Sequence record: PV261925.1
Reading direction: 5' to 3' (one strand)
DNA length: 64,000 nt
Shown: one piece after another, positions 18,880-60,935 of the stretch
Position numbering within the stretch: the first letter of the stretch is position 1
How the letters are laid out: every line of letters begins with the position of its first letter
Program-made: the position numbers and the translations under genes
Notes under the pieces: model-generated
Databases searched by the model: none
What the model saw: the letters and a program-made list of their open reading frames with translations, nothing else
Told to the model about the DNA's origin: nothing

Positions 18880-18910
18880 CCCAGATTTGGGTGGGGGTTC
18901 TGGGTCCCCC
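18880..18910 (-). promoter_or_regulatory. H-type pseudoknot in the gp32 leader (putative translational autoregulation operator)
   Basis: GGGGG-A-CCCAGA-A-CCCCC-ACCCAAA-TCTGGG: 5 bp S1, 6 bp S2, 33 nt upstream of the gp32 ATG. Confidence 0.7.
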
Positions 18911-18912
18911 AT

Positions 18913-18941
18913 AATATAACCCCTTTACGGGGAGGTGTCAA
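18913..18941 (-). promoter_or_regulatory. sigma70-type promoter upstream of gp32
   Basis: TTGACA-N17-TATATT. Confidence 0.6.
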
Positions 18942-19428
18942 CAGTGTATTTAGGGTGTTTCTTCCACCCCTTGTGTTGTTTTCTACCCTCTAAACCACGA
19001 CACACTTTATTCATACCACTTGGGTCTAAATTATTCTCAAGACAAAATTGTTTGAGGTTATGGACGACCACATACTGACCGTCAGGAGACTGTAGGTGGT
19101 AAGTTTTACTTGTATCAGGAGGATTGACCCTCCCCCTCTCTACACCCCCTCTAATGTTGTCTGATTGTGTTCCCCAGACCAGGTTGGTGTAATGATTGTT
19201 AGAGGGGTCGTCATCCATATGTTGAACCACAGGATAGTTCTCTGGATTAGGACAATACTTTTCTCCTACAAGTCTATGGACATAAAAACACCTGAACTTT
19301 CCATCATCACATTTCAGACAGACATGTTTGTAACCTTGACCCCTGTCATATTGTGTCATAACTTTGTTATCGTCTCTGATGACGATACCTTCAGGGGTCA
19401 CTGTGTATATTGATAAGTAATTCATCAC
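18925..19428 (-). mobile_element. free-standing HNH homing endonuclease (HNH_3 type, C-terminal DNA-binding domain)
   Basis: FYVHRLV...NPENYPVVQHMDDDPSNNHYTNLVWGTQSDN. Confidence 0.85.
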
Positions 19429-19586
19429 TCTTCCTCCATCAAGGGGACAAAGAAGTCCAGGAGGTCTTCTACCTCTCCATACTTCTCTTTCATCTCTTGA
19501 TAGTAACTATAAAGTTGATATTCTAACATGTTACAGGTCTCTATCTCTTCTTCGAGAGACCTGATACAATCTTTAATTCTTGACAT
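19425..19586 (-). CDS. small acidic hypothetical protein (53 aa)
   Basis: Hand-translated MSRIKDCIRSLEEEIETCNMLEYQLY...; stop overlaps the HNH start. Confidence 0.55.
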   Translation of the reverse strand: MSRIKDCIRSLEEEIETCNMLEYQLYSYYQEMKEKYGEVEDLLDFFVPLMEEE

Positions 19587-19719
19587 AAAAATAATCCATA
19601 ATAGGTTTCTAAGTCGGGGAGACTTATACTATGTATTATAGATTAGATTTTACTATTTGTCTATATGGTTTATCCCTACGGGATAAAGTTACGAAGTAAC
19701 TTTTCTTTTAGTAATCTTT

Positions 19720-19777
19720 ATAGTAACCTTATCTTCCAGGACAAACCTAGTCTACACATGGTTTGAGAAGTTGTCAA
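19720..19777 (-). promoter_or_regulatory. promoter + conserved leader element, copy A
   Basis: TTGACA-N17-TAGACT-AGGTTTGTCCTGGAAGATAAGGTTACT; near-identical to 30428-30485. Confidence 0.65.
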
Positions 19778-19882
19778 GAGGGACCAGGAGAGACTTATGG
19801 ATACTGTCTCCCCAGACTTTACCTATACCTCTCTCAGTCCCTCTCAGATGAGTTTAGAGACATCCCAGGTCTATACAGTTCG

Positions 19883-20218
19883 TCAGAGACTTTCGTCAAG
19901 GTGTTTCCTCATGTTGTCGATGATGTTGGTCATGTTACTGAAGACGTATGTCAGGTCCACGTCAGCAGGGAATCCGAGTTGACGTGCAGAAGCCATGATA
20001 CTCTCCTTCATCATCTGAGCTTCGGGATCATCAGATAAGCTCAGACGAGTGTAGAGAACCTGTTGTTTCTTTAACAGACTCTCTAACATTTCAACATGTT
20101 CCAACTTATCTTTGTTGGTCATTGATGCGAACGCAAACACGTTCTTATAGATCTCTTCTTGTAATTCGGAGATCTCTTTCATTTCCGTTTGAACTATTTC
20201 TGATTGAAAGAAACTCAT
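19883..20218 (-). CDS. conserved cyanophage hypothetical protein (DUF1825-like)
   Basis: MSFFQSEIVQ.EM.EI.ELQEEIY...RLSLSDDPEA. Confidence 0.7.
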   Translation of the reverse strand: MSFFQSEIVQTEMKEISELQEEIYKNVFAFASMTNKDKLEHVEMLESLLKKQQVLYTRLSLSDDPEAQMMKESIMASARQLGFPADVDLTYVFSNMTNIIDNMRKHLDESL

Positions 20219-20379
20219 TCTACTTCTGCTTCTTGATTGTTAGACTCTTCGATCTGTTCCAGAACGTCAATGGCACCGAGGATCTTAAGATACATCTCTC
20301 GTCCACCATCGATTTGTTGTTCGAGTTCAGCCTTTTGCTTTCTCAGATTTTCAAGCACGGTAGCATTATCAAGAGCCAT
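20215..20379 (-). CDS. small coiled-coil hypothetical protein (54 aa)
   Basis: Hand-translated MALDNATVLENLRKQKAELEQQ...LKILGAIDVLEQIE; fills the gap between gp59 and 19883-20218. Confidence 0.65.
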   Translation of the reverse strand: MALDNATVLENLRKQKAELEQQIDGGREMYLKILGAIDVLEQIEESNNQEAEVE

Positions 20380-20980
20380 TGATTATTACCTCCTTGAGGA
20401 TAGATCTAAATTTAAATACATCAATATGTATAAAGGAATCATACTTATCAATTCTCATCGATAAGAACTTCCACACAGGGTCATCCAGTTTACTATCGAA
20501 TTGTTTTTTGAATCCTAAGATCTTATTTAAGATCACTAAAGACTCAAGGGAAAGGTTCTTTCCCAGGTGTTCTTTGATGAGTTGAGGGTGACGAGTTCCC
20601 TCAATCTTGAACATCTCATCAAAGTTTTTACCAGAAAAAACATTCTCTACTTCTGATTTGAACGTATAAGATAGAGACTGAAGACGTTTTTTCCAATCGG
20701 TGTAGTTCTGTTCACCGTTCCTGACGATCTCACCAATCCACAGAGACTGAGGATCATCACAAGACACAAAATTACTGACAAAGAATTCAATAACTTCACT
20801 ATCATCTTTCTGCCGACTCAATTTTTCAAAAAAGAACCTGTCTTTACGTTTGTAAAAGGACTCTAATGATGCACGAGACTTACCACCATAACGATGGTAA
20901 TCATATTTTTCTTTTGTAAAGTGATTTTTCAATCCAAGATAACTCTTGTAAGTGTCGAAGGGTGTCACTTTAGGTATCAT
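20369..20980 (-). CDS. gp59: loader of gp41 DNA helicase gp59
   Basis: YLGLKNHFTKEKYDYHRYGGKSRAS.ESFYKRKDRFFFEKLSR. Confidence 0.85.
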   Translation of the reverse strand: MIPKVTPFDTYKSYLGLKNHFTKEKYDYHRYGGKSRASLESFYKRKDRFFFEKLSRQKDDSEVIEFFVSNFVSCDDPQSLWIGEIVRNGEQNYTDWKKRLQSLSYTFKSEVENVFSGKNFDEMFKIEGTRHPQLIKEHLGKNLSLESLVILNKILGFKKQFDSKLDDPVWKFLSMRIDKYDSFIHIDVFKFRSILKEVIINGS

Positions 20981-21246
20981 AAAGGTAGTTTCGCATGAGA
21001 TGTACGTTTCAATAGGTTGAGTTCCATAGCCTCAGCCTTAAGTTTTTCCTTCAAAGGTTTGGATATTAACTTAGGAATAGACTCAATGTCAATATTATTA
21101 CTCTCACAAAAGAAAACAATTGAGTCCATGTACTTCATGTCCTTGTTCTCTTTTGCAATCTTCTCAATCTCCTCCGAGAAAGTTCTACTATTATAGAACT
21201 TCTTTTCGATGAGTTGATCAACACTGAGTTCTTCAGATTTAGGCAT
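20977..21246 (-). CDS. gp33: late promoter transcription coactivator gp33
   Basis: FSEEIEKIA...YMDSIVFFCESNNIDIESIPKLISKPLKEKLKAEAMELN; start moved to MPKSEE. Confidence 0.85.
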   Translation of the reverse strand: MPKSEELSVDQLIEKKFYNSRTFSEEIEKIAKENKDMKYMDSIVFFCESNNIDIESIPKLISKPLKEKLKAEAMELNLLKRTSHAKLPL

Positions 21247-21904
21247 GTTGCTGTAGTTTGAATTCAACAAACTCGCTAATATATTCTGCGAGAAGGTTGA
21301 TGTACTTTCTCTTATCATACTGTTCATAGACTTCAACTTCTCCATTTTCACAAGACATAATGATGACAAATTTTTTGACCATAATACCAGTCATTTCATA
21401 GAGCATACAAGCATAGGCTGCACACTGTACATAATAATGTTCGATCCACTTTTCTGGTTTTGGTTTCTTACTTGTCTTGAAGTCAATGACAGCAAGTTCT
21501 CCATCATACTCAGCAATACAATCGACTGTTCCTGCAACACCTAACTCTTTACTATAAAGAGCCTGTTCGATTGCATGAATGTTGTCAATTTTGTCTAGAT
21601 CAGGTTTGGCTTGTTTAAAAAGGAACTCTGACAATGGTTGCACTGTCGGAAGTTCCTTATTCAACATATAGTTTTCAACCAGTGTGTGCATGTCAGTTCC
21701 ACGACTGGTTGCTGCCTTTGTGATCTTGTTTGCTTCTTCAACACCAACCCTTTTTCTCCACTTAGTGAAGATTTCTCGATTGTAGTGACTAATAATCGAT
21801 GTGATGGAAACTAATTTTTGTCCATCTGGAGTATCATAATACCTTACACCGTCAATCATCTCTCTATCGAGAGTTGGATAATCAATTTCAATGTGATTAA
21901 ACAT
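21239..21904 (-). CDS. PD-(D/E)XK exonuclease
   Basis: SITSII...ATSRGTDMH...GVAGTVDCIAEYDGELAVIDFKTS...YYVQCAAYA. Confidence 0.85.
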   Translation of the reverse strand: MFNHIEIDYPTLDREMIDGVRYYDTPDGQKLVSITSIISHYNREIFTKWRKRVGVEEANKITKAATSRGTDMHTLVENYMLNKELPTVQPLSEFLFKQAKPDLDKIDNIHAIEQALYSKELGVAGTVDCIAEYDGELAVIDFKTSKKPKPEKWIEHYYVQCAAYACMLYEMTGIMVKKFVIIMSCENGEVEVYEQYDKRKYINLLAEYISEFVEFKLQQHA

Positions 21905-22668
21905 TACATACCGAGTTCAAGTTTAGCAATGATGTACTCTTTAACAAGACCACTTCTACAGATATCTTCTGCATTGAATTCAATTGTATCAAAGGATGGC
22001 ATATTAGTCAAGATACGCATGAAGTCTGCGATACCATTCCTCTCATTCTGTTTGGTCAAATCGGACTGAGTTGCATCACCACAGAACATGATCTTAGAAT
22101 TCTCACCGATACGAGTGATCATTGAATCAAGTTCATGGAAGTTCAGGTTCTGGAACTCATCAACAATCACAATCACATTATCCAATGTGGTACCACGAAT
22201 GAATGATGTGGACCAGAAAGAAATAGTTCCCTGTGCCTTAAGATTGTTATACAACATCTCAAAGGATGCATCATCAGGCATCTCGAACATGTACTTGACC
22301 ATGTTCTTGTATGGAATCTGATACAAAGAAGACTTGTCCTCATGGTCACCAGGAAGGAAACCAATCTCTCTGGTCGGTACAAGAGACCTGACGATGTAGA
22401 TCTTCTCGTAGGGTGACTTGGGGTCTAAGACATCCAGAAGGGCGTTGTAGAGGGTGATAAAGGTCTTACCTGTACCAGCACACCCGTAGGCAACTAAGTT
22501 CTGTTGTTCCTTATACTTCTCAAAGAAAACTTCTTGGTTCTCTGTGATTGGTTCTACCTTCTTGATATAGTCAAGATTGATTGGTTTCTTTCTCTTCATT
22601 ACCCTATTGCTCATACCAAATGGAACTGGGTTAGTAGTTCCGACACCTGTCTTTTTCTTTGCCGGCAT
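21904..22668 (-). CDS. phoH: PhoH-like ATPase
   Basis: GCAGTGKT Walker A, IGFLPG, RGTTLDN..VIVDEFQN, GDATQSD; start moved to MPAKKK. Confidence 0.93.
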   Translation of the reverse strand: MPAKKKTGVGTTNPVPFGMSNRVMKRKKPINLDYIKKVEPITENQEVFFEKYKEQQNLVAYGCAGTGKTFITLYNALLDVLDPKSPYEKIYIVRSLVPTREIGFLPGDHEDKSSLYQIPYKNMVKYMFEMPDDASFEMLYNNLKAQGTISFWSTSFIRGTTLDNVIVIVDEFQNLNFHELDSMITRIGENSKIMFCGDATQSDLTKQNERNGIADFMRILTNMPSFDTIEFNAEDICRSGLVKEYIIAKLELGM

Positions 22669-22672
22669 AAAA

Positions 22673-22924
22673 TTAATCGTAGTGTTTGAGTGTTGAACCT
22701 GGTTGTTTCTTGGCTGCGCCAATTACATCTTTCCAACCTGGATGTTTGGTGTAGATCTTATTAAATGGATCACCCATTTCAACACCCAAACAAGGAGCGT
22801 TGTCGGGGGTATAAAAACGTTCCCAGTCGGGATTGTCCTCACGCCATTGATCCCATGCATGAATACTCATCTGGATCTCTTTCTCTTCACCAGTCTTCTT
22901 ATTTCTTACTGGATACGTTGCCAA
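22673..22924 (-). CDS. conserved T4-like hypothetical protein (FmdB-like neighbour of phoH)
   Basis: MATYPVRNKKTGE.KEI.MSI..WDQW..DNPDWER. Confidence 0.65.
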   Translation of the reverse strand: MATYPVRNKKTGEEKEIQMSIHAWDQWREDNPDWERFYTPDNAPCLGVEMGDPFNKIYTKHPGWKDVIGAAKKQPGSTLKHYD

Positions 22925-22954
22925 CTTATTTCTCCATTGTAATGTGTATATTTA

Positions 22955-23590
22955 TTACCACTCCAGAGCCTCTGAAATGACAGGGAATTGCTCCTTGAAG
23001 ATCTCCTTACAAGAGTTTGCAATGTCCATGTGTTCCTTCTGTGTACCATTGGCAGACCGAAGATCGATGTAATGAATCCAACTGCGAATTGAACCAGTCA
23101 TATACATTTTGGTTGGTGTTGCCAACGGCAATACAAAGCGAGCACATTCTTTGGCGACTCCTGCTTCCAACATCTGATTGTAAAGATTATATGAGGAACT
23201 AAACAGAGTGACCATCTGACGTTCCAAACGGTCAACAACTTCAGGATCAAGATCGTCAATACTATTCTGACGATTCTTAACGTCTTGACGCCTCAGTTCG
23301 GGGAGTTCAATCTCAGTAGACAAGAGATTAGTACTTGCATATCGTTGAGAGAACTCTTGGAATGTAAACGAACGATGCCGCAAGACTTGAGCAGCAAGAC
23401 CACGGGTAGTCTCAATCTCAAGAGTCATGAATGCTTGTTCAAAAATACTCCAGTGTTGATGTTTGATACAATATCTTAGGAGACCAGCAAAGTTCTCATT
23501 GTCCTGATTGTTTGGGTTAGACACACGTGCACAGTATGCAATGTGTTGCTCAGCATCAGGAGTGACTGAGATTAGTTTCGCTTGATTCAT
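22955..23590 (-). CDS. thyX: FAD-dependent thymidylate synthase
   Basis: HQHWSIFE, RHRSFTFQEFSQRY, ARFVLP, LRSANGTQKEH. Confidence 0.95.
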   Translation of the reverse strand: MNQAKLISVTPDAEQHIAYCARVSNPNNQDNENFAGLLRYCIKHQHWSIFEQAFMTLEIETTRGLAAQVLRHRSFTFQEFSQRYASTNLLSTEIELPELRRQDVKNRQNSIDDLDPEVVDRLERQMVTLFSSSYNLYNQMLEAGVAKECARFVLPLATPTKMYMTGSIRSWIHYIDLRSANGTQKEHMDIANSCKEIFKEQFPVISEALEW

Positions 23591-23711
23591 GTTTCTTTTG
23601 TGACTTTTGTTGTTTACGTTCCTTCTTTACCCTTTGTACATAAAGTCTCTCACCTTCTGTGAAAAGTTCTGGGTGTTTAAGGATGTACTTGATTGCTTTC
23701 TTTGTTTTCAT
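23556..23711 (-). CDS. small basic hypothetical protein
   Basis: MKTKKAIKYILKHPELFTEGE...; ORF track with adjusted start. Confidence 0.55.
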   Translation of the reverse strand: MKTKKAIKYILKHPELFTEGERLYVQRVKKERKQQKSQKKHESSETNLSHS

Positions 23712-23919
23712 GATTGAAGTATGCGTTGAAATATGCAACGATTCCATTACTTAACTTGTTCCCCTGAGAGATCCAAGTGTCAACACACTCATAGATATCT
23801 TTTGTTGAATATGATGTTTTGTCTATACGACCACTACCATATCTATTTAACAAAACTTTAAGACATTGTTCACGGAGTTTCATTCTCTCCTCCGTGTACC
23901 TCCAATCCTCATTCGTCAT
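23677..23919 (-). CDS. hypothetical protein
   Basis: MTNEDWRYTEERMKLRE...IYECVDTWISQG; ORF track with adjusted start. Confidence 0.6.
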   Translation of the reverse strand: MTNEDWRYTEERMKLREQCLKVLLNRYGSGRIDKTSYSTKDIYECVDTWISQGNKLSNGIVAYFNAYFNHENKESNQVHP

Positions 23920-24151
23920 CTTCGAATACCTCATCGTAGTCAGGGAGTGGAGGAAGTCTTTCCTCCGTCTTTACGTATGCACCAGGATCAGAATACACCT
24001 CCGATTCCAATGCGTCAAGTAGAAGTCTGAGATTTCTGATGATTAATTTAAGATTGTCTTTTTCCATAAAAAAAGGGGACCTATGTCCCCAGTCTAACAG
24101 ATTATTGAACAAGTGACAAGTCACTTGACGTAAGTGCGTCCACGGTAGCAA
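23909..24151 (-). CDS. hypothetical protein (likely start MEKDNLKLIIRNL)
   Basis: ORF track; the N-terminal extension overlaps a terminator hairpin, so the true start is probably later. Confidence 0.55.
   Translation of the reverse strand: MLPWTHLRQVTCHLFNNLLDWGHRSPFFMEKDNLKLIIRNLRLLLDALESEVYSDPGAYVKTEERLPPLPDYDEVFEDDE
24066..24092 (-). terminator. rho-independent terminator after the DUF4278 gene
   Basis: GGGGAC-ATAG-GTCCCC followed by a T run on the minus strand. Confidence 0.7.
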
Positions 24152-24288
24152 AATGTTCCGTGGGTTTCATTTTTCTCTTCACAGTGTACATCATACTCAA
24201 CACCACGATATGCAGTGTGAGAAATCTGTGCGTCGTGAAGTGCAGATGCTTTGTTGATCTGCTTCTTGATCATGTTCAGTGTGTTCAT
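24121..24288 (-). CDS. DUF4278-family small protein (55 aa, two YRG motifs)
   Basis: Hand-translated MNTLNMIKKQINKASALHDAQISHTAYRGVEYDVHCEEKNETHGTFCYRGRTYVK; SD AGGAG. Confidence 0.8.
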   Translation of the reverse strand: MNTLNMIKKQINKASALHDAQISHTAYRGVEYDVHCEEKNETHGTFCYRGRTYVK

Positions 24289-24299
24289 GAGTTTACTCC

Positions 24300-24538
24300 T
24301 GAAATACTAGGGATTTTTACCCCGTTCCTTCAGTCGTGTGCGTCCCTGATACACCTCATTCCATGACTGCCGACAAGTTTTTTAAGAATTTGAGTCTTAG
24401 ACTTATCAGAAAGATATGGATCTTCCATAACCACATCTATAACTTCCTTCACCGACTCACAGGACATTGGATGTTCTGAAGCAGTTGCAGGAGTGAATAG
24501 AAGTAGAAGGAGTATGAAGTATTTCATGGGATGAACGA
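24300..24538 (-). ncRNA. Downstream-peptide (glutamine-II riboswitch)-like aptamer, split by an ORF in its P2 loop
   Basis: 5' half TCGTTCATCCC (24538-24528); 3' half GGGACGCACACGACTGAAGGAACGGGG...TTTCAG; P1 CGTTC/GAACG, P2 TCCC/GGGA, pseudoknot CTGAAG/TTTCAG next to the SD. Confidence 0.6.
24330..24527 (-). CDS. small secreted/membrane protein (65 aa, signal peptide, two Cys)
   Basis: MKYFILLLLLFTPATASEHPMSC...MRCIRDAHD. Confidence 0.7.
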   Translation of the reverse strand: MKYFILLLLLFTPATASEHPMSCESVKEVIDVVMEDPYLSDKSKTQILKKLVGSHGMRCIRDAHD

Positions 24539-25111
24539 TTAGAGTGATTTTTTCCAGCGACGAATAGAAGTATGAGATGTTTGATAAACTTCTGCAAGTT
24601 TTCTAATGGGTAAAGATAAAATAGATTCATCTTTACTTACATCTTTTAGAAAGTCATCATACATTTTACCTCTGGTATATGTTATGGATTTAGTAGTAGC
24701 GTATTCTTTTGGATTACGACTTCTACCTTTCCACCACCCAGAAGGAATGTCATTCTCATAAACTACTCGTTCATTTTTACCGTCAGTAATACGAACTTTA
24801 CCAAAACAGGGATTGCCTCTACCAATTCGTTCTCCCTGAGAACAGAAAGAAAATGAAGAAGATGTTTGCTTTGCCCTATTAGCAAAGTGAGGATTAGTAT
24901 CAACTTGATAAAACTCATGGAGTTTTACTTCCGCTTCAACTGCTTCCTCTCTCGTAGCATGTTCGGTAAGAATGATTTTAGAGGAAGGATTAAATGTTTT
25001 GTCTCCATAGGAACCAAAATAATTATCCTCCACTGGATTACACTCACATCCTCTGCTACCAATGTAGCCTCTCCCAAAGGGTTCGTAAGAGTAGTAAGTG
25101 TAATAAATCAT
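24539..25111 (-). mobile_element. free-standing GIY-YIG (Seg-like) homing endonuclease
   Basis: YYTYYSYE..GRGYIGSR...REEAVEAE...FAN; C-terminal NUMOD-like GKVRITDG...GWWKGR and HTH segments. Confidence 0.8.
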
Positions 25112-25125
25112 TCTAATTGCTTACG

Positions 25126-25170
25126 CTCCGTTCCGCGACTTACTTGCGTCCAGTTACCTGGATGAACGAC
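25126..25170 (-). ncRNA. glnA (glutamine-I riboswitch)-like aptamer
   Basis: GTCGTTCA-TCCAG-GTAA-CTGGA-CGCAAGTAAGTCGCG-GAACG: P1 CGTTC/GAACG, P2 hairpin, GCAAGTAA junction. Confidence 0.55.
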
Positions 25171-25176
25171 AGGTCT

Positions 25177-25205
25177 ATTATAGACCACTGTAGTTATTTA
25201 GTCAA
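25177..25205 (-). promoter_or_regulatory. sigma70-type promoter driving the riboswitch-like leader
   Basis: TTGACT-N17-TATAAT, ending 7 nt before the aptamer. Confidence 0.75.
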
Positions 25206-25392
25206 GGGGCCCGTACTCTTCGCCCTCTTTGATCAGTTGGGACACATAGTTTTCTGTCCCATCCATGGTCTTGACTTCGAAGATCGTGGACTTCTGATAC
25301 TTCTTGATCTTTTTATATTTTTTGACGAGGGCTTGAACCTGATCTTGGTTCATGTCCAAACCTTCGAACTTAATATCAAATCCGTTACTCAT
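25198..25392 (-). CDS. hypothetical protein (64 aa)
   Basis: ORF track; coupled to the upstream ORF. Confidence 0.65.
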   Translation of the reverse strand: MSNGFDIKFEGLDMNQDQVQALVKKYKKIKKYQKSTIFEVKTMDGTENYVSQLIKEGEEYGPLD

Positions 25393-25670
25393 TTTCTTTT
25401 CTTCTCGGACTTCTTATCACCACCCCAGAGTTTGGGATTGATTCGACCTTCAGTTTGTGTCATGTTCTTGAAATCACTACGGTAGTTATCCCAATAATGA
25501 TCAAAGATATCTACCTTCTTCTTTGAAGTTACAATATCAAACTTTGTCATACCATCTTGAAGATACTCAACAAGATAAGCTGTGTATGGGAGACTCTTGT
25601 CTTGTGCAAGTGATGGGTCACAATCCTGATGGAGAATTCTTATACTATCACTCAAGATCGACCACCCCAC
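25389..25670 (-). CDS. conserved cyanophage hypothetical protein
   Basis: IRILHQDCDPSLAQDKSLPYTAYLVEY...FDHYWDNY...TEGRINPKLW. Confidence 0.7.
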   Translation of the reverse strand: MGWSILSDSIRILHQDCDPSLAQDKSLPYTAYLVEYLQDGMTKFDIVTSKKKVDIFDHYWDNYRSDFKNMTQTEGRINPKLWGGDKKSEKKRK

Positions 25671-26125
25671 TCAATATCGGGATAGGCTTTACGAACCACA
25701 TCATCAGTGATCTTGTACTGAGCACCAAGACGTTTGTCTTTTACAAGACACAAGATCGATGCTTCCTCAGGATGAAGACCTTCGAGCATTTGAATAAACA
25801 TAGACTCTCTACGTGTCTTAGAGAGACCGTCATTACCACCTTTTACAAAGTGATACAGATTCCTACACTCCTTACGAAGTGAGGTGTGATCGGTGCCAAG
25901 AGGTGCCTCATTCTTATTAAAAGGTACTTCACCCTCAGGGAGCATTGACAGAACACTGTCATCAAAGTTCCAAATCAGAATAGATGTGAGTGCATCACAT
26001 CGATGTTCTTGTAAGATTTCAATCTTTTTTGCTTTCGTTCTTTGTTTAGATACCAACTCAAGAATCTCATGAACAAATGGGTTGGGAGGTAATTTAGTTT
26101 TCACAGTGAAAGATTTAGTTGCCAT
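25652..26125 (-). CDS. conserved T4-like hypothetical protein
   Basis: LPPNPFVHEILELVSKQRTKAKKIEIL...RRESMFIQMLEGLHPEEA. Confidence 0.75.
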   Translation of the reverse strand: MATKSFTVKTKLPPNPFVHEILELVSKQRTKAKKIEILQEHRCDALTSILIWNFDDSVLSMLPEGEVPFNKNEAPLGTDHTSLRKECRNLYHFVKGGNDGLSKTRRESMFIQMLEGLHPEEASILCLVKDKRLGAQYKITDDVVRKAYPDIEWGGRS

Positions 26126-26164
26126 TGTATGTTCAATTTAGTTTAGAATATTTATTTGGTGGTG

Positions 26165-26386
26165 TCAATCTTCAGACTCAAAGTCCTCTAGGCTATTTTC
26201 AAACCTAACAGCTAAAACATCATCTGGAATAATTTGTCCATTTTCGTCAAACATCTCTGGATGTGTTGGAATAAATGTTGAATTCCTTTCGATTACATAT
26301 TCCTTTAAAAGATATCCAATCACTCCTCCCACCAAAAGGAACATGATTGAAATGACCGTGGACAATGTAAGTGTGACTGCTAACAT
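26165..26386 (-). CDS. small membrane protein
   Basis: N-terminal TM helix; HPEMFDENGQIIPD. Confidence 0.7.
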   Translation of the reverse strand: MLAVTLTLSTVISIMFLLVGGVIGYLLKEYVIERNSTFIPTHPEMFDENGQIIPDDVLAVRFENSLEDFESED

Positions 26387-26387
26387 C

Positions 26388-26624
26388 TTAGCTCTCCTTT
26401 TTTCTTATGTCAAACTGAATGTCTAAGAAAAAATGGAACTCTCTTCGAAGGAAGGAGACCATCTTTCCAAACTTTACTTGAAAAGTTTTAGGTGGTTCCC
26501 TCCTCTTTTTATTTCTGAGTAATAATTCAAATCCCCTATTCATCTTAGGAGACTCGTTGTCATTATTTAGAGACTCTTCGTTTTCTTCCAGGTCGTTTAT
26601 CATTTTTATACCTCTCTGCGTCAT
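26388..26624 (-). CDS. hypothetical protein (start uncertain)
   Basis: ORF track; fills the gap on the operon strand. Confidence 0.5.
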   Translation of the reverse strand: MTQRGIKMINDLEENEESLNNDNESPKMNRGFELLLRNKKRREPPKTFQVKFGKMVSFLRREFHFFLDIQFDIRKKES

Positions 26625-26913
26625 GAAGAATATTGGCGAGATAATTCTTAATCTTTCTTGCCTCTGGTTTACCTAGGTGACCGTAACCCTCACGTAATTG
26701 TTTGTGAACCTCGTCACTACCACCCTCCAGATACCCTTCAAGGTCCAACACAAGGTTCTTTACCTCAGTGGCAGTACAACTCATCAGGAACTCCTCTACG
26801 ACAGTTCTAGAGACCTTACTGTCTTTGAGATATGCATACATGTCAAGCATATATTTACCTTCGAAGACGTAATCAATTGTCTTCTCTACTACTTCGTATA
26901 GTTCCTCTACCAT
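26563..26913 (-). CDS. conserved cyanophage hypothetical protein
   Basis: LREGYGHLGKPEARKIKNYL. Confidence 0.7.
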   Translation of the reverse strand: MVEELYEVVEKTIDYVFEGKYMLDMYAYLKDSKVSRTVVEEFLMSCTATEVKNLVLDLEGYLEGGSDEVHKQLREGYGHLGKPEARKIKNYLANILHDAERYKNDKRPGRKRRVSK

Positions 26914-27152
26914 TACACCAACTTATTCTCCTTCAAATATTTAACAGTTTCCATGCATCCACCAATAGTTTTACCATCAACTGATACCTGAGGGAAGGTA
27001 GAACCTTGTCCAAAGTCAGCATAAAATTGATTTTTATCAAAGTCTCTACCCAATTTGAGTTCAACATACTGAAGTTCAGCAAGTTGTAATGCAGAAACTA
27101 CCTTGGTGCAATAAGGACAACCGTTCTTTGAGTAAACAGTGAAGACTTTCAT
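26913..27152 (-). CDS. nrdC: glutaredoxin
   Basis: YSKNGCPYC...TFPQV..DGKTIGG. Confidence 0.9.
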   Translation of the reverse strand: MKVFTVYSKNGCPYCTKVVSALQLAELQYVELKLGRDFDKNQFYADFGQGSTFPQVSVDGKTIGGCMETVKYLKENKLV

Positions 27153-27236
27153 AGTAAAATTAATAGTGGGATTGAGATAGTTAGAATTGCTATTAGGAAA
27201 CCCCCTGCCATATTTAACAGGGGGCGTGTACTGTGT

Positions 27237-27404
27237 TCAGTCATCTTTCTTTTTACGTTTACCCGTGATCTTATCGTAGTCATACTTCATAGCCATAACG
27301 AGCCATGATGATGACAACGAATCTGGACCATGATCGAGAAGATATATCTGACGTTCAGATAACTTCTTCATCTTCTTGTACTCTTCTCGCCAAGTATTAT
27401 CCAT
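27237..27404 (-). CDS. small hypothetical protein (55 aa)
   Basis: Hand-translated MDNTWREEYKKMKKLSERQIYLLDHGPDSLSSSWLVMAMKYDY. Confidence 0.6.
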   Translation of the reverse strand: MDNTWREEYKKMKKLSERQIYLLDHGPDSLSSSWLVMAMKYDYDKITGKRKKKDD

Positions 27405-27416
27405 GTATATATCTAG

Positions 27417-27442
27417 ACAAAAAAAGAGGGGTTGACCCCTCT
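27417..27442 (-). terminator. terminator after psbD
   Basis: AGAGGGG-TCAA-CCCCTCT followed by a T7 run. Confidence 0.7.
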
Positions 27443-27467
27443 ATAGTATCACGTTGTCAAGTTCTTG

Positions 27468-28529
27468 TCAAAGAGCATTGCCACGTGGGAGTACTTCCTC
27501 AGGAAAAACAAAGTTTTCATGTGGCTGATCGACTCCTGCCATCCATGCACGAATACCTTCGTTCAAGAGAATGTTCTTAGTATAAAAAGTCTCAAACTCT
27601 GGATCCTCCGCCGCACGAATCTCCTGAGATACAAAGTCGTAAGCACGAAGATTAAAAGCGAGTCCAATAATACCGATAGAAGCAGTCCAGAGACCCATGA
27701 CGGGAACAAAGAGCATAAAGAAATGCAACCAACGCTTGTTACTAAAAGCAATACCGAAAATCTGTGACCAGAAACGGTTCGCAGTAACCATCGAGTAAGT
27801 CTCCTCCTCTTGTGTACTATCAAAAGCTTTGAAAGTATTCGCTTGTTCGCCATCTTCGTAGAGTGTGTTTTCGACTGTCACACCGTGAATGGCTGAGAGT
27901 AAAGCACCACCAAGGATACCTGCGACTCCCATCATGTGGAAGGGGTTGAGTGTCCAGTTATGAAATCCTTGTAGAAAAAGTAGGAATCGGAAGATTGCCG
28001 CGACACCAAAACTCGGCGCAAAGAACCAACTGGATTGTCCAAGTGGATAGATGAGAAATACAGAAGTGAATACGGCAATAGGACCTGAAAAAGCAATCGC
28101 ATTGTAGGGACGGATACCGACGAGACGAGCAATTTCAAACTGACGTAACATGAAACCTATGAGAGCAAATGCTCCGTGGAGTGCCACGAAATTCCAGAGT
28201 CCCCCAAGTTGGACCCAACGGACGAAATCTCCCTGAGCTTCAGGACCCCATAAGAGTAAGAGGCTATGTCCGAGAGCATCAGCAGGAGTAGAAACAGCAG
28301 CAGTGAGAAAGTTAGCCCCCTCAAGATATGAACTCGCCAGGCCATGGGTGTACCAACTGGTAGCAAAGGTGGTTCCTGTAAGCCAACCGCCAATAGCGAG
28401 ATAAGCTGTAGGGAAAAGGAGAATGCCAGACCAACCGACAAAAACAAACCGATCACGCTTAAGCCAATCATCGAGAACATCGAACCAGCCTCCCCCTTGT
28501 TTAGGAATAGAAAGTGTAGATGAAGCCAA
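27468..28529 (-). CDS. psbD: photosystem II D2 protein
   Basis: [21 protein letters not shown]...[10 protein letters not shown]; TTG start with a GAGG SD. Confidence 0.98.
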
Positions 28530-28561
28530 AAGTTTAACCTCTTAGAATACTTATCATATTT

Positions 28562-28590
28562 AGTTTACACTTCTTTACAAAAGGGGTCAA
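28562..28590 (-). promoter_or_regulatory. psbD promoter with an HLR1-like direct repeat
   Basis: TTGACC-N17-TAAACT; plus-strand TTTACACT-TC-TTTACAAA at 28564-28581. Confidence 0.55.
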
Positions 28591-28647
28591 GAGTAGAACT
28601 ACTTACTCTTTTTCTTTTGAGGACGATACAACTGGGGCCAGGTGTCT

Positions 28648-29091
28648 CTAATAATTTCCGCTAGTTTGTAAGGTGTCTGTGTGGTTATCATTGAGATAGT
28701 TAATCATCCTTGAAAGAGTATCTATATTATCACCAATGTGACCAAGGGCAACGTTACATTTACCACAAAGTAGACCTCTTACCTTGCCTGTGGTGTGACA
28801 ATGGTCAACATGAAATCTCTTACCATTTGAAAATGTGGTGTCGTCTGTTCCACATATTGCACACTTATAATTTTGTCTTGTGAGCATATCATCATATTCA
28901 TTGAGAGTAATACCATACTTACTCTTCAAATCCTTCTCTCTCTTTCTCTCTGGAGAGTATCTCTCTTTCTTTACCTTAGCCTGACAGGGTTTACAGTGAG
29001 AAGAATATTTTCTACTTCCATCAACTCTCTTTCCCTTAGGAGAGAATGACTTGAACTCTTTTGTTTCTCCACATTTATTACAGACGCGCAT
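28648..29091 (-). mobile_element. endonuclease VII-type HNH homing endonuclease between psbA and psbD (F-CphI-like)
   Basis: C..C...C..C N-terminus; YGITLNEYDDML..QNYKCAICG...FHVDHCHTTGKVRGLLC..CN..LG...DN; same position as F-CphI in S-PM2. Confidence 0.85.
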
Positions 29092-29118
29092 AAAAAAAGA
29101 GGAGTGTTAACTCCTCTT
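29092..29118 (-). terminator. psbA terminator abutting the endonuclease ATG
   Basis: AAGAGGAG-TTAACA-CTCCTCTT plus T run, then ATG. Confidence 0.7.
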
Positions 29119-29148
29119 ATTTAACATATTATTCAGTTTTTGTCAACT

Positions 29149-30228
29149 TCAACCAATTGAAGGAGCAGTGAGAGCTACAGGAGTAGACTCGGCAGCTGCA
29201 AGGTCAAGCGGGAAATTGTGTGCGTTCCTTTCGTGCATCACCTCCATCCCCAGACCAGCGCGGTTCAATACGTCAGCCCAAGTGTTGAGGACTTTACCCT
29301 CAGAAGATTGGATTGACTGATTGAAATTAAAGCCGTTCAAGTTGAATGCCATAGTTGACACGCCGAGGGCGGTAAACCAGATGCCGATGACAGGCCATGC
29401 TGCCAGGAAGAAGTGGAGCGAACGTGAGTTGTTAAAAGAGGCATACTGAAAGATAAGTCTTCCAAAGTAACCGTGGGCAGCCACGATATTATATGTTTCC
29501 TCTTCTTGACCAAACTTGTAACCGTAGTTCTGTGACTCGTTCTCAGTGGTTTCACGAACCAGTGAGGAGGTAACCAGTGAACCATGCATTGCGGAGAACA
29601 GTGAACCACCGAAGACACCAGCGACACCCAGCATGTGGAAGGGGTGCATCAGGATGTTGTGTTCTGCCTGGAAGACAAGCATGTAGTTGAAGGTACCAGA
29701 GATACCCAGGGGCATACCATCAGAGAAAGAACCTTGACCGAAAGGATAGACGAGGAAGACTGCGGATGCAGCTGCAACAGGTGCAGAGTAAGCAACACAG
29801 ATCCAAGGACGCATACCCAGTCTGTATGAAAGTTCCCACTCACGACCCATGTAGCAGAAGACGCCGATGAGGAAGTGGAAGACTACCAGTTGATAAGGAC
29901 CACCATTGTAGAGCCATTCATCCAGAGATGCGGCTTCCCAAATGGGGTAGAAGTGAAGACCAATTGCGTTGGAAGAAGGAACAACTGCACCAGAGATGAT
30001 GTTGTTACCGTACATCAGAGAACCAGCGACTGGTTCACGAATGCCATCGATGTCCACTGGGGGAGCAGCGATGAACGCAGTAATGAAACAAACGGTTGCT
30101 GCCAACAGAGTTGGGATCATCAGCACACCGAACCAACCGACATACAGACGGTTATTTGTGGACGTGACCCAGGAACAGAAGGATTCCCAGGTAGAGGCGC
30201 CTTGTTGGCGCGAAAGAGTTGCGGACAT
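29149..30228 (-). CDS. psbA: photosystem II D1 protein, intronless
   Basis: Continuous ORF ...[14 protein letters not shown]...[14 protein letters not shown]; start moved to MSATLSR. Confidence 0.98.
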
Positions 30229-30231
30229 TGT

Positions 30232-30345
30232 TTTGAACAAAAAAGTAAGACCATCAGGGAAATGGTGGAGTTACTATTTCCTCGTACCCTTAACGAGGAT
30301 ATGAAAGACGTGTTTATACTCCCTAGAGGTCTTGGTTTAAGGGGA
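30232..30345 (-). ncRNA. structured psbA 5' leader (PhotoRC-II-like)
   Basis: Hairpins CCTCGT-TAAGGGT-ACGAGG and ACCAT-TTCCCTG-ATGGT; wording matches my recollection of cyanophage psbA leaders. Confidence 0.55.
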
Positions 30346-30380
30346 GTTTAGGTAAGTCAGGAAACCCTGACCTGTCCATG

Positions 30381-30414
30381 TATTTATAATAACCTACTTT
30401 GGTGGTCCTGTCAA
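30381..30414 (-). promoter_or_regulatory. overlapping early (sigma70) and T4 late promoters of psbA
   Basis: TTGACA-N17-TATTAT, and TATAAATA at 30388-30381. Confidence 0.75.
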
Positions 30415-30427
30415 CTCTCTTAGCCAC

Positions 30428-30485
30428 TTGACAGACTGTCCATTCTTGAATAGAATAGGCTTGTCCAGGATGATAAGGGTTTACT
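30428..30485 (+). promoter_or_regulatory. promoter + conserved leader element, copy B
   Basis: TTGACA-N17-TAGAAT-AGGCTTGTCCAGGATGATAAGGGTTTACT. Confidence 0.65.
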
Positions 30486-32412
30486 TAGGTAATCTTTTAG
30501 CTTTTTCTACTTTTTTATCAATAGCTTTAATACCAGTCCTTGGCATTGCTTTAGCACTAATAGGATCTAGTTTATTAAATCTTTGAGAAGTCTTCTCACC
30601 TGTTACAAGATCAGGATGAAGTCCTTTGATCTGAGGTGGTGGTGGATTCTCTGGGAACTCAGGTTTAATATCTTTATCTTTAAAGAATGCTTGTGGATTT
30701 TTAAGTTTTCTTTCCACAATCATTTCTCCTTCTGGTTCATAAGAATTTTTTTGATGTTGTCTATTTGTTTTCCATTTGTTTCTTACTCTCTGTCTATTTT
30801 TAACAGCATTTGCTCTTCTTTCTTCTGCTCTCTTAATTCTTTCAGGATCACCACTAGCATTTGCTGCTTCAAGTTCAGCAGTTGCATCTTGTAATTGTTT
30901 ATCAGCTGCAGCAGTTTCTTGTTTTTGTTGTTCACTGGTTCCTCTTTCATAGTCTTGAGCATCTCTTTCAGCTCTTCCCATGTCAGGTTCCCAATTATTG
31001 ACTAACCATTCTGCTGCATCATATGACAGATTAGTTACTGCCATAACTCCAGCAACACCCAATCCAATAAGTCCTGAAATAGCTTCAGCACTTAAACCAA
31101 GAAGTCCAAGTTCACCCATGGCTTGATCCATAGCAGTTTGATATAATTCTGTACCATATGGATTCTTAGAAAGTGGTGTCAAGTCTTGACTGTAATCAAC
31201 CTCTGCTGCTTGTTCCCATGATGGTGCTTGAGAAGGATCAGTAAACTCTCTGTCGGCATTAGTACCAGGGAAGGAGTCACCAAATTTATTAAGAAGATAT
31301 TGGTCACTTGCATTCATCATCTCTCTGAGTTTTTTAATCTTCTGTTCATTTGATAATTTTGAGAACTCGCCAGTCCTTACAAACGATGAAGACTCTGGAT
31401 TATCAAGAGGAACAAATACTGTGAGGGGAGTTTTTCTTTTCAGACCAATATTAGATACTGTAAATGTTCTTGCATAATTTCCATTTAAATCAGAAAAATT
31501 ATCTTTAATCCAATCCCACAAATACAATCTATCTGCTTCTGTATGACCACCCGTCTCACCAGAGACAGGCCAGGGATCATATCCACCATATTCTCTTCCA
31601 CTATAAAAATCCCAAATCAATAAAGTTATAGAAGTACTTTTATAATCATCATCTGCCCAGTCATTATTTACAATGTCCCATATTCTCGCTGCAGATGCTG
31701 TGTTCGCAACGGTTGCACCCCAAAAATTTCTACCCATTGCAAGTCTTGAAAGATAATCAGTTCTATAATTTTCATTATCAGAACTATCGAAAGTATCTAC
31801 TTTGAATTGAAAGCTAGTATTTTTTTTTCTAGCCTCTGGTGGTAGTTCAAAATTATATTCTCCACTTGACAAAAGAGACCCTACAATAGTTCCAAAATCA
31901 AAAGAAGTATCAAACTCACCCCCATCCCCATTATATCCATAAAATTGAACTTTTAAAGGGTGAGCAGGTAGTGGTGCATTATTTCCTGTTCCAACTGTTA
32001 ATCTAAACGAGAGGTGACTTAAAAGACTTGTATCATAAGTAGTAGTTGTACCCCATTGATACCAATTCTGCCCGTATTGTCCACCACCTGGTTCTACTGT
32101 TCCAAATTTAATTTCACCATCAGCCACCAATCCAAATTGAGATTGCATTGCATCATCAGTAGCAGGGACATCTGTAAGAACAGTATCACCCTCTGATGGA
32201 AGAGTTGATGCATAGGTGAATGCCTGAGTGGTCATTCCTTCATCTAGATCAAATCTCCAGTTGGAATATAAAGGACTATTTTTGTTTAATAATGTTTCTA
32301 ATTCTTTTTTACGACACAGTTCTTCTATACGCTTCTCTTCCTGAAGCTTCCATGTATTTCTTTTGACATCCGCCATGGATACATGACGAAGAATTGAATT
32401 ATAAGACGCCAT
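30481..32412 (-). CDS. large hypothetical protein (643 aa), possible internal virion protein
   Basis: ORF track; YSNWRFDLDE and SYEPEGEMIVE motifs; acidic beta-rich middle and coiled-coil segments. Confidence 0.7.
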   Translation of the reverse strand: MASYNSILRHVSMADVKRNTWKLQEEKRIEELCRKKELETLLNKNSPLYSNWRFDLDEGMTTQAFTYASTLPSEGDTVLTDVPATDDAMQSQFGLVADGEIKFGTVEPGGGQYGQNWYQWGTTTTYDTSLLSHLSFRLTVGTGNNAPLPAHPLKVQFYGYNGDGGEFDTSFDFGTIVGSLLSSGEYNFELPPEARKKNTSFQFKVDTFDSSDNENYRTDYLSRLAMGRNFWGATVANTASAARIWDIVNNDWADDDYKSTSITLLIWDFYSGREYGGYDPWPVSGETGGHTEADRLYLWDWIKDNFSDLNGNYARTFTVSNIGLKRKTPLTVFVPLDNPESSSFVRTGEFSKLSNEQKIKKLREMMNASDQYLLNKFGDSFPGTNADREFTDPSQAPSWEQAAEVDYSQDLTPLSKNPYGTELYQTAMDQAMGELGLLGLSAEAISGLIGLGVAGVMAVTNLSYDAAEWLVNNWEPDMGRAERDAQDYERGTSEQQKQETAAADKQLQDATAELEAANASGDPERIKRAEERRANAVKNRQRVRNKWKTNRQHQKNSYEPEGEMIVERKLKNPQAFFKDKDIKPEFPENPPPPQIKGLHPDLVTGEKTSQRFNKLDPISAKAMPRTGIKAIDKKVEKAKRLPK

Positions 32413-32437
32413 CTACGTAGATGTTTTCTTATATTTA

Positions 32438-32596
32438 TTAGTAGGTAAATTCGTTTATGTAATCAAGAACCTTGTTGAGATACTCGTCAGCAAGGTATTT
32501 GTTTTCTGCAAGACCTTCTCTATCTTTGAGTTCGTTTTTCAATCTATAAACCTTAGATAAAATCTCATACCTGGTCAGTTGTCCGTGGGGCATCAT
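32438..32596 (-). CDS. small hypothetical protein (52 aa)
   Basis: Hand-translated MMPHGQLTRYEILSKVYRLKNEL...LADEYLNKVLDYINEFTY. Confidence 0.6.
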   Translation of the reverse strand: MMPHGQLTRYEILSKVYRLKNELKDREGLAENKYLADEYLNKVLDYINEFTY

Positions 32597-32975: not shown

Positions 32976-33473
32976 ATGAAAAAAGTCTTTCTGACTTTAG
33001 GTATGTTATTGATGACCGCAGGTGCTGCAAATGCTGGCGGACTTGTTCATAGTATGTCTTCTTCTGTTCAACTGACTGTTGATTCAGCAAGAACCCAATC
33101 AACTAGACTTGGTAATCAGTACTCCGTGTCAGGAAGTAACGTCAATACTTCTGATGGAACAAATTCAGGAGCATTGACCACTGGTTCAATTTCAAGTGGT
33201 GTCTATTCACCTGGTACCATCACTGCAACTCAAGCAACAGCTGGTGAAGCATTCTCTTTCTCAACTTCATTTATTGAGGGTGATGCTCTGAGCACTTCTG
33301 CTCCTACTGTAGGAACTGTAAGTAACTTCTCAAGTCAAACTTCTTATGCATCTGGATCAGCTGGAACTCTTGCAGGTACAATTACAACTGATGGTGGTAT
33401 CACTCTGACTGCTGGTGGAGCTGGTACAAGCGCAACGGGTCAATTCGTCTCTGAAATCACGGTCATCGATTGA
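32976..33473 (+). CDS. signal-peptide S/T/G-rich protein
   Basis: MKKVFLTLGMLLMTAGAANA signal peptide; CTAAATA late-like box upstream. Confidence 0.75.
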   Translation: MKKVFLTLGMLLMTAGAANAGGLVHSMSSSVQLTVDSARTQSTRLGNQYSVSGSNVNTSDGTNSGALTTGSISSGVYSPGTITATQATAGEAFSFSTSFIEGDALSTSAPTVGTVSNFSSQTSYASGSAGTLAGTITTDGGITLTAGGAGTSATGQFVSEITVID

Positions 33474-60729: not shown

Positions 60730-60812
60730 GTACTCAGGCTCGCCAAGTTATTTTTATCACTGAGTAATAACTAAATCTCAGGCGGGGAGAGATCCCATCC
60801 GCACCAACTAAT
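60730..60812 (-). ncRNA. wcaG-like RNA motif
   Basis: TTGGTGCGG...CCGC, CTGAG-loop-CTCAG with the loop AGTTATT pairing downstream AATAACT, TGGCGAGCC; family name from recollection. Confidence 0.5.
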
Positions 60813-60935
60813 CTTTGGAGAATTAGTAAACTCAGTTGGGTCCAGTGACTCCACCACTTAGTTTTACGAACTAAGAAACGCGGGATTGAAGGGGCCTCCC
60901 TTCACCGACCAGTGCTGTTATAGTCCCTCCGTGAC
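60813..60935 (-). ncRNA. manA-like RNA motif
   Basis: Follows a mannose-6-phosphate isomerase gene; hairpins GAAGGG/CCCTTC, CTTAGTT/AACTAAG; GGTGGAGTC..GGACCC; family name from recollection. Confidence 0.45.

Follow-up and report, generated by a model that had tools for sequence, protein, structure and literature searches.

Several T4-like bacteriophages carry promoter cassettes that recur along the genome, the promoter-early stem-loops (PeSLs) of RB49/phi1, T4/PST and KVP40/nt-1 (Arbiol et al. 2010, PMC2839356; Comeau et al. 2014, PMC4122927). MotA and AsiA are absent from cyanophages (PMC2984593), and the cyanomyovirus literature reports sigma-70-like early promoters, NATAAATA late promoters and motifs upstream of psbA. 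Here we describe a repeated cassette, made of a predicted sigma-70 promoter and a conserved box over its predicted start site, in Synechococcus phage RB11-B, a T4-like cyanophage of Synechococcus sp. MW02 (PV261925.1, 210,127 bp). The window, that is, the whole stretch of DNA that was analysed, comprised 64,000 nt (bases 1-64000 of PV261925.1) and held two copies of the cassette, A and B. Two further systems are close enough to be compared with it. The T4 replication origins oriF (uvsY) and oriG (gene 34) consist of a promoter and a downstream unwinding element that forms an R-loop; they use MotA-dependent middle promoters and need no conserved sequence at the start site. In addition, phage early promoters can carry operators at their start sites, and overlapping divergent promoters can exclude each other. 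The explanation that we favour, held tentatively and just short of even confidence, is that A and B belong to a cyanophage promoter cassette with four copies in RB11-B, in which the box would act as an operator and the promoter would compete with a neighbouring one.

Four copies in RB11-B and a family in cyanophages

A sequence-only reading of the window had presented A and B as a duplicated promoter with a 22-nt leader and no obvious cognate open reading frame (ORF), and the letters of both copies were exactly as given there. The two boxes were identical at 19 of 22 positions and the spacers were unrelated, which bears out the pattern of likeness originally described. Both predicted promoters matched the sigma-70 consensus at 10-11 of the 12 hexamer positions, with a 17-nt spacer. 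When a degenerate pattern of the box was allowed up to three mismatches, its only matches in the window were A and B, and 100 dinucleotide-preserving shuffles of the window gave zero matches. The repetition therefore lies far beyond chance, although the number of copies had to be revised. Using a profile of 23 distinct modules, nhmmer found exactly four copies in the RB11-B genome (A to D, E = 6.7e-16 to 2.5e-14) and, over the whole genome, nothing between E = 2.5e-14 and E = 0.25. The search of the genome and its relatives that had been proposed as a check thus added two copies in RB11-B and many in other cyanophages. About 57 further TTGAC[AG]-N16-18-TANNNT sites in the RB11-B genome, including the psbA, gp32 and gp55 promoters, lacked the box, indicating that the cassette is a discrete promoter subclass and not the general RB11-B promoter.

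The four RB11-B copies have AGGYTTGTCCWGGAWGAT in common. Their upstream flanks were unrelated and showed no common hairpin, and the copies other than A run into coding sequence. Copy D is the predicted sense promoter of an operon headed by a 64-aa ORF (phrog_1653). Near their starts, B and C can yield only antisense or non-coding RNA. For A, the absence of an obvious cognate ORF is only partly correct, as A is followed on the same strand by a 53-aa ORF (ORF53) and an HNH endonuclease gene, which have a proximal promoter of their own.

The cassette was also found well outside RB11-B. In IMG/VR, 37 stretches matched 18 bases of the box exactly; CTTGACA-N17-TAGAMT stood directly before the box in 33 of them, with free spacers, and the remaining four were GC-rich chance matches. 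Classified by their neighbouring genes, these loci were B-like (pointing away from psbA), C-like (pointing away from gp55) or D-like (before the 64-aa ORF operon, phrog_1653), with a few other placements, and relatives of region A were confined to four near-identical phages. A and B aligned without gaps to 77 other modules. In prokaryote genomes, the promoter accompanied none of 121 boxes among the matches listed (at least 121) and the box occurred at about chance frequency, so that a host origin of the cassette was discarded. These counts point to a cassette specific to T4-like cyanophages, and we are highly confident that A and B belong to this family. Rfam contained no family matching the cassette at the gathering score or at E <= 1, and a literature search on cyanophage transcription, whose reach did not extend to Doron et al. 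2016, found no description of the box.

Seven complete genomes were scanned (RB11-B, Syn9, S-PM2, S-SKS1, S-8S53, S-SM2 and P-TIM68). Six of the seven carried 2-4 copies with the genome's own version of the box and with differing spacers and flanks; the six genomes other than RB11-B had 1-3 copies each, P-TIM68 being the one with a single copy. The two copies had AACACTG.CAGGGTTGA in common in Syn9, AACTCTGTC..GGGTTCATGAGA in S-PM2, and an unusual CTGC replacing CTGT in S-8S53, while the two boxes of S-SM2 were related (16/20). S-SKS1 presented two copies whose boxes were identical (20/20) and whose spacers were unrelated, plus one of another box type. Specifically, besides the two identical ACCTTTGTTAGGGTTGAAGAG boxes, a third promoter at ~61597 on the minus strand of S-SKS1 (NC_020851.1) carried the RB11-B-like box AGGTTTGTCCCCGTTAAAGATAA, so that two box types occur within one genome.

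Extra copies preceded unrelated genes (phrog_1653, phrog_718 and phrog_507), and those of Syn9, S-PM2, S-SM2 and S-8S53 were predicted sense promoters just before small ORFs. Orthology of these extra copies was considered and rejected, as the genes after the second copies of Syn9 and S-PM2 were unrelated to the 64-aa ORF that follows D. Since the spacers have diverged completely, to saturation, and the box has not, the box is under selection. The likeness of the boxes within each genome fits both a single lineage-specific trans-acting factor and homogenisation by duplication or gene conversion.

The box over the predicted start and the gp55 copy

The cassette can be written as (C)TTGACA-N17-TA(G/C)A(A/C)T plus a box of ~22 bp that begins directly after the -10. 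In the alignment of 79 modules, a TGT within the box was invariant. Transcription from sigma-70 promoters usually starts ~7 nt past the -10, and the G of this TGT, which lies 7-8 nt after the -10 and is preceded by a pyrimidine, is the putative start. With this start, the box would span about -6 to +16 and only its last 16 bases would be leader. The "22-nt leader" of the sequence-only reading is therefore a genuine conserved block, of which six bases would be untranscribed and 16 transcribed. Among the 23 distinct modules, the untranscribed AGGYTT was as invariant as the transcribed part while the spacers varied freely, which points to an element at the DNA level.

The TGT is flanked by a short inverted repeat. 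The left arm begins at the first base after the -10, and the two arms show compensating changes between lineages (AGG..CCT, GGG..CCC, ACC..GGT, AACC..GGTT, AACTCT..AGGGTT, AACTTT..GAAGTT and GCT..AGC). As a control, chimeras were built by joining the left part of each module to the right part of another. The mean Watson-Crick stem was 2.73 in real modules and 1.98 in chimeras (maximum 2.23 in 300 trials). The Watson-Crick co-variation is thus real, though based on few independent events. An RNA hairpin at the 5' end was considered and rejected: an apparent G.U-specific pairing on the cassette strand vanished in the chimera control, and the left arm lies upstream of the predicted start. The apparent wobble signal arose because a pyrimidine-rich left arm opposes a purine-rich right arm, that is, from composition.

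The copy next to gp55 was universal. We took 80 gp55 loci from IMG/VR, with gp55 identities from 95% down to 64%, and all 80 presented a divergent TTGACAAG-N17-TA(G/C)A(A/C)T promoter with a related box just upstream of gp55. In 72 of the 80, a gp55-sense TTGTCA-N17-TATAAT promoter was also present, whose -35 overlapped that of the cassette; the two can overlap since TTGACAA is the reverse complement of TTGTCAA. The stop codon of the Sm-like gene (Pfam Sm_like, E = 9.6e-11) was located ~16-25 nt past the box, an arrangement kept in all gp55 loci examined. A conserved stretch 25-45 nt after the gp55-side copies was considered as an RNA element and rejected, being the C-terminus of the Sm-like protein (..EKLYK(N/S)S and the stop) on the opposite strand. 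This universal copy points towards uvsW and uvsY. We infer that it is the founder and that the other copies spread from it to lineage-specific places.

The same promoters bear on the annotation of gp55. The RB11-B gp55 promoter, TTGTCA-N17-TGnTATAAT, falls inside the first 22 annotated gp55 codons and the relatives begin at MPKPRN, so that the RB11-B gp55 start has probably been annotated 22 codons too far upstream.

Surroundings of the copies

Table 1. Positions in PV261925.1 of the cassette copies and of the features around them (arrows give the reading direction; ORFs follow genetic code table 11).
Feature	Position	Strand	Remarks
Copy A, whole cassette	19777->19727	-	nhmmer E = 8.4e-16 against the 23-module profile
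Copy A, -35 TTGACA	19777-19772	-	followed by a 17-nt spacer
Copy A, -10 TAGACT	19754-19749	-	
Copy A, 22-bp box AGGTTTGTCCTGGAAGATAAGG	19748-19727	-	
Copy A, predicted start G	~19742	-	by consensus spacing
Copy B, whole cassette	30428->30478	+	nhmmer E = 6.7e-16 against the 23-module profile
Copy B, -35 TTGACA	30428-30433	+	followed by a 17-nt spacer
Copy B, -10 TAGAAT	30451-30456	+	
Copy B, 22-bp box AGGCTTGTCCAGGATGATAAGG	30457-30478	+	
Copy B, predicted start G	~30463	+	by consensus spacing
Copy C	102037-102087	+	between gp55 and the Sm-like gene, directed away from the former; predicted start ~102072
Copy D	176372-176321	-	the 64-aa ORF, first in a run of small ORFs, has its ATG 22 nt downstream; predicted start ~176336
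gp55 as annotated	101513..102058		locus L008, 2014-2559
Hairpin 1 after A, AAAGTTAC-TTC-GTAACTTT	19703-19685	-	perfect
Hairpin 2 after A, TTTATCCC-GTA-GGGATAAA	19687-19669	-	perfect
Proximal promoter TAGACA-N17-TATAAT	19663-19635	-	sigma-70-like (11/12), predicted
ORF53	19586..19425	-	53 aa; phrog_10005
HNH endonuclease gene	19425..18925	-	Pfam HNH_3, E = 5.5e-9
995-bp insertion relative to RN05-S	19892..18898	-	replaces 38 bp of RN05-S
psbA promoter TTGACA-N17-TATTAT	30414->30386	-	back-to-back with B
PhotoRC-II RNA motif in the psbA leader	30266..30359	-	Rfam, 75.7 bits (gathering score 39); outside the cassette
643-aa ORFan	30481..32412	-	
Single-gene indel relative to S-B05 (1963 bp)	30479..32441	-	holds the 643-aa ORFan
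First terminator-like hairpin on the B strand	32469-32496 (feature to 32505)	+	10 pairs, then ATTTGTTTTC

Copy A belongs to an insertion that is missing from RN05-S, a phage whose flanks are 98.9% identical to those of RB11-B. The insertion carries, in this order, copy A, two hairpins, a proximal promoter, ORF53 and the HNH gene. The two perfect hairpins were confirmed at 19703-19669 on the minus strand, as the sequence-only reading had them, and ~130 nt of AT-rich DNA lie downstream of A, next to gp32 and gp59. The proximal promoter is located 114 nt past the start of A's -35 and ~42 nt ahead of the ORF53 start codon. On its left, the insertion is joined inside the -35 of the RN05-S gp32 promoter (directly after CTTGAC), and no second cassette copy was found at its far junction. 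The exchange replaces the gp32 promoter core; both RB11-B and RN05-S retain a GGGGG..CCCCC hairpin at the 5' end of gp32.

The predicted A transcript had a minimum free energy of -36 kcal/mol (z = -2.97 relative to shuffles), with a structure specific to the A insertion. In this fold, bases of the transcribed box segment are paired with those of the two hairpins' arms (GAUAAGGUUAC with GUAACUUUAUC, GUCCU with AGGGA). Towards the 3' end, a long hairpin forms between the proximal -10 region and the stretch immediately ahead of the ORF53 start codon. Given this hairpin, the modelled read-through RNA from A would probably not be translated, and the RNA from the proximal promoter probably would be. 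Copy A has a gene downstream but is probably not that gene's working promoter.

Copy B indeed enters the 643-aa gene from its 3' end, and the psbA promoter stands back-to-back with it, the two -35s being 13 bp apart. Apart from the PhotoRC-II motif of the psbA leader, the window had one other Rfam match, a wcaG RNA at 60732-60835 on the minus strand (66.4 bits). Neither Pfam nor PHROG gave a match for the 643-aa ORFan; at the same place, two IMG/VR loci (L018 and L041) have homologues of it (521 and 1047 aa) that share the N-terminus MASYNSILRH. S-B05, which is 99.3% identical on both sides, has 6 bp in place of 30479-32441. This insertion or deletion (indel) begins exactly at the last base of the B box, its 3' end, and no second cassette copy was found at its far junction. 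Both A and B are thus located at indel borders between near-identical phages.

In the other B-type loci, two or three small minus-strand genes are followed by a plus-strand operon 0.5-0.7 kb downstream. The RB11-B counterpart of this operon begins at 32976, which is 2.5 kb from B; a consensus promoter was not found ahead of it, so that B could also be its distant promoter. No terminator-like site was found within ~150 nt of B or C, or after B within 30479-31400; the first such hairpin on the B strand lies ~2 kb after B, on the far side of the 643-aa gene. In S-B05 this hairpin is located ~50 nt after the B start and would end an RNA of ~85 nt (z = -1.88). A small-RNA gene at B in S-B05 was rejected, as the hairpin lies inside a conserved 52-aa gene on the opposite strand, is absent from other B-type loci and reaches a z score of just that value; it may be coincidental. 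The first 158 nt of the RB11-B B transcript were not more structured than shuffles (z = +1.08). This value, together with the lack of a nearby terminator after B or C and of an Rfam match, leaves the idea of a small-RNA family, also raised in the sequence-only reading, weak.

Some side observations concern the arrangement and composition of these genomes. In S-B43 (MN018232.1, 183000-199000), copies A and B are convergent and only ~5 kb apart, and the psbA-B-643aa-OMP1 block is joined straight to gp32, S-B43 being either rearranged with respect to RB11-B or differently assembled. The flanks of A and B are unchanged in S-B43, indicating that recombination between the copies was not involved. 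The RB11-B genome (210 kb) contains only 7 CCGG sites where base composition predicts ~320, and this scarcity could reflect restriction avoidance or a modification target; GGCC (96 sites) is not depleted. A Dcm-type CCWGG site within the box was dropped as a candidate, since CCWGG is not avoided (322 genome sites against ~193 expected). The genome also repeats the 11-mer AGGTGAGTAAT 11 times, its 10-mer core AGGTGAGTAA 13 times and TAAATAACTA 12 times; AGGTGAGTAAT and TAAATAACTA are perhaps ribosome-binding or late-promoter contexts.

Explanations of the cassette and known systems

In the favoured explanation, the box would be an operator-like recognition site for a phage-lineage-specific trans-acting factor, and this factor would switch a small set of promoters on or off together. 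At gp55, where the -35s overlap, firing or silencing of the cassette would occlude or free the partner promoter, and at psbA, with its 13 bp between the -35s, the same competition would probably take place. The RNA made would be incidental: messenger RNA (mRNA) at D, a read-through RNA with a masked endonuclease start at A, and RNA antisense to the 643-aa gene at B and to the Sm-like gene at C. Taken by itself, this mechanism of an operator-like box and promoter competition is plausible and falls short of probable.

In a bolder version, the cassette and the gp55 promoter would form a toggle of two promoters that sets the moment at which T4-like cyanophages, which have neither MotA nor AsiA, turn to late transcription. 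During early infection, the strong cassette promoter would hold the common -35, so that the gp55 promoter stays closed; once a phage factor bound the start-site box, the cassette would fall silent and gp55 would be released. The copies at psbA, at the HNH cassette and at the small-ORF operon would respond to this factor in step, and co-evolution of box and factor would explain why each lineage has its own box on all copies. We regard such a toggle as rather unlikely.

Several points weigh against an operator. Promoter activity and start site are predictions from the consensus, and the factor that would bind the box is hypothetical. Recent duplication or gene conversion could produce the likeness of copies within a genome with no need for a common factor. 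When G.T pairs were allowed, the stem was 3.96 in real modules and 3.95 in chimeras, giving no signal. The inverted repeat of the RB11-B lineage measures only 2-3 bp (AGG-YTTGT-CCT), too little for a palindromic operator, and clades have common box types, which leaves few independent compensatory events, about five or six. In addition, the cassette may already have been described by Doron et al. 2016 (ISME J), who reportedly mapped start sites and promoter motifs of Syn9 and named a 'novel regulatory element' for early genes. The cassette box is unlikely to be that general early element, because Syn9 has only two copies.

An alternative that is compatible with the favoured explanation gives the transcription itself a role. 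B and C would send polymerase and antisense RNA against the upstream gene on the same strand as their neighbour (the 643-aa gene and the Sm-like gene, respectively), which would block read-through into psbA or gp55 or down-regulate the upstream gene; the box would set strength or timing only. Both copies lie between two same-strand genes and point backwards, C keeps its place near the Sm-like stop at every gp55 locus examined, and the IMG/VR B-type copies always meet minus-strand genes first. Moreover, with the first plus-strand terminator-like hairpin just past the 643-aa gene, the B RNA would span the whole gene. However, D is a plain sense promoter, as are the extra copies in five other phages, the genes facing B-type copies vary among phages, and the B transcript lacks a structure signal. 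An antisense or insulating function is therefore possible but unlikely as the explanation of the cassette.

The box could also act in RNA, as a common 5' tag. Its transcribed 16 nt (GUCCWGGAWGAUAAGG in RB11-B; GU..GGAGGUUGAUAAG in relatives) would then stabilise the 5' end as a Shine-Dalgarno-like sequence or be recognised by a ribonuclease or RNA-binding protein, giving all cassette transcripts the same fate. This part is purine-rich and Shine-Dalgarno-like in all lineages (GGAGG, AGGG, AGGA...AAGG), is conserved among paralogous copies and, in copy A, is complementary to the downstream hairpin arms. The six untranscribed bases are nevertheless equally conserved and co-vary with +3 to +9, which a tag leaves unexplained unless the start lies elsewhere, and no conserved fold accompanies the transcribed part. 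We consider an RNA tag fairly unlikely.

Spread of a mobile cassette of the PeSL type, without any regulator, would account for the conservation by its recency, the repeats serving as short homologies for gene gain, loss or exchange. This concept is established in other T4-like phages (PMC2839356, PMC4122927), and it agrees with the position of A within the 995-bp insertion, with the left junction of that insertion in a promoter -35, with the start of the 643-aa indel exactly at the 3' end of the B box, and with the extra copies before unrelated genes in different phages. Against it, genomes contain 1-4 copies and not the dozens known for PeSLs, no stem-loop lies upstream of the promoter, neither indel has a second copy at its far junction, and Puxty et al. 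(2015, PMC4503421) judged the density of PeSLs in cyanophage S-PM2 to be too low. The saturation of the spacers beside an unsaturated box, moreover, needs selection on the box. As a sufficient explanation, it is improbable.

R-loop replication origins, the first proposal of the sequence-only reading, in which a primer transcribed from the promoter would remain annealed to AT-rich DNA downstream, are unsupported and very improbable: the strong promoter of A is followed by such DNA beside gp32 and gp59, the universal copy points towards uvsW and uvsY and two copies lack a nearby sense ORF, but GC skew is uniformly negative and its cumulative curve has no inflection genome-wide (a weak test for a phage that replicates mostly by recombination), several copies are mRNA promoters of the ordinary kind, with a start codon a few tens of nt downstream, the conserved block includes six bases upstream of the predicted start that T4 R-loop origins do not require, and copy number and positions vary among close relatives, A being absent from RN05-S and P-TIM68 having one copy.

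The favoured explanation matters for the control of cyanophage transcription. In T4-like cyanophages, early, middle and late transcription are ordered although MotA, AsiA, Alt and Mod are lacking (PMC2984593), and the cassette is a candidate for part of this control, as a conserved element that overlaps the promoter of the late sigma-factor gene and recurs at psbA and before small genes of early type. In addition, three readings are corrected here, namely the start of gp55, which is probably annotated too far upstream, the leader, which is mostly a start-site element, and copy A, which is part of a mobile endonuclease insertion.

Compared with the T4 origins, the cassette is alike in that its transcript need not encode anything and in the AT-rich DNA after copy A; it differs in that several copies are predicted mRNA promoters and in showing no origin signal by GC skew, a weak test. 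The likeness to operator-controlled early promoters lies in a partly palindromic element centred on the +1 of a predicted strong promoter and in a divergent partner with an overlapping -35. Here the difference is that the palindrome is very short in the RB11-B lineage and that the binding protein is hypothetical. With PeSLs, the cassette has in common a short, repeated near-consensus sigma-70 promoter (its activity being predicted here) in T4-like phages, sites at indels between close relatives (A relative to RN05-S, B relative to S-B05) and copies ahead of unrelated small ORFs. In PeSLs, however, a terminator stem-loop lies upstream of the promoter, whereas the box described here lies downstream of the -10, over the start. 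PeSLs also cluster by the dozen in hyperplastic regions, compared with four cassettes in 210 kb of RB11-B and 1-4 per genome, and nothing like the fixed gp55 copy with its common -35 has been described for them. As the upstream stem-loop and the many clustered copies, two defining features of PeSLs, are lacking, we do not classify the cassette as a PeSL. If it proved to be only a strong promoter that spread, it would be the ordinary cyanophage counterpart of the PeSL cassettes.

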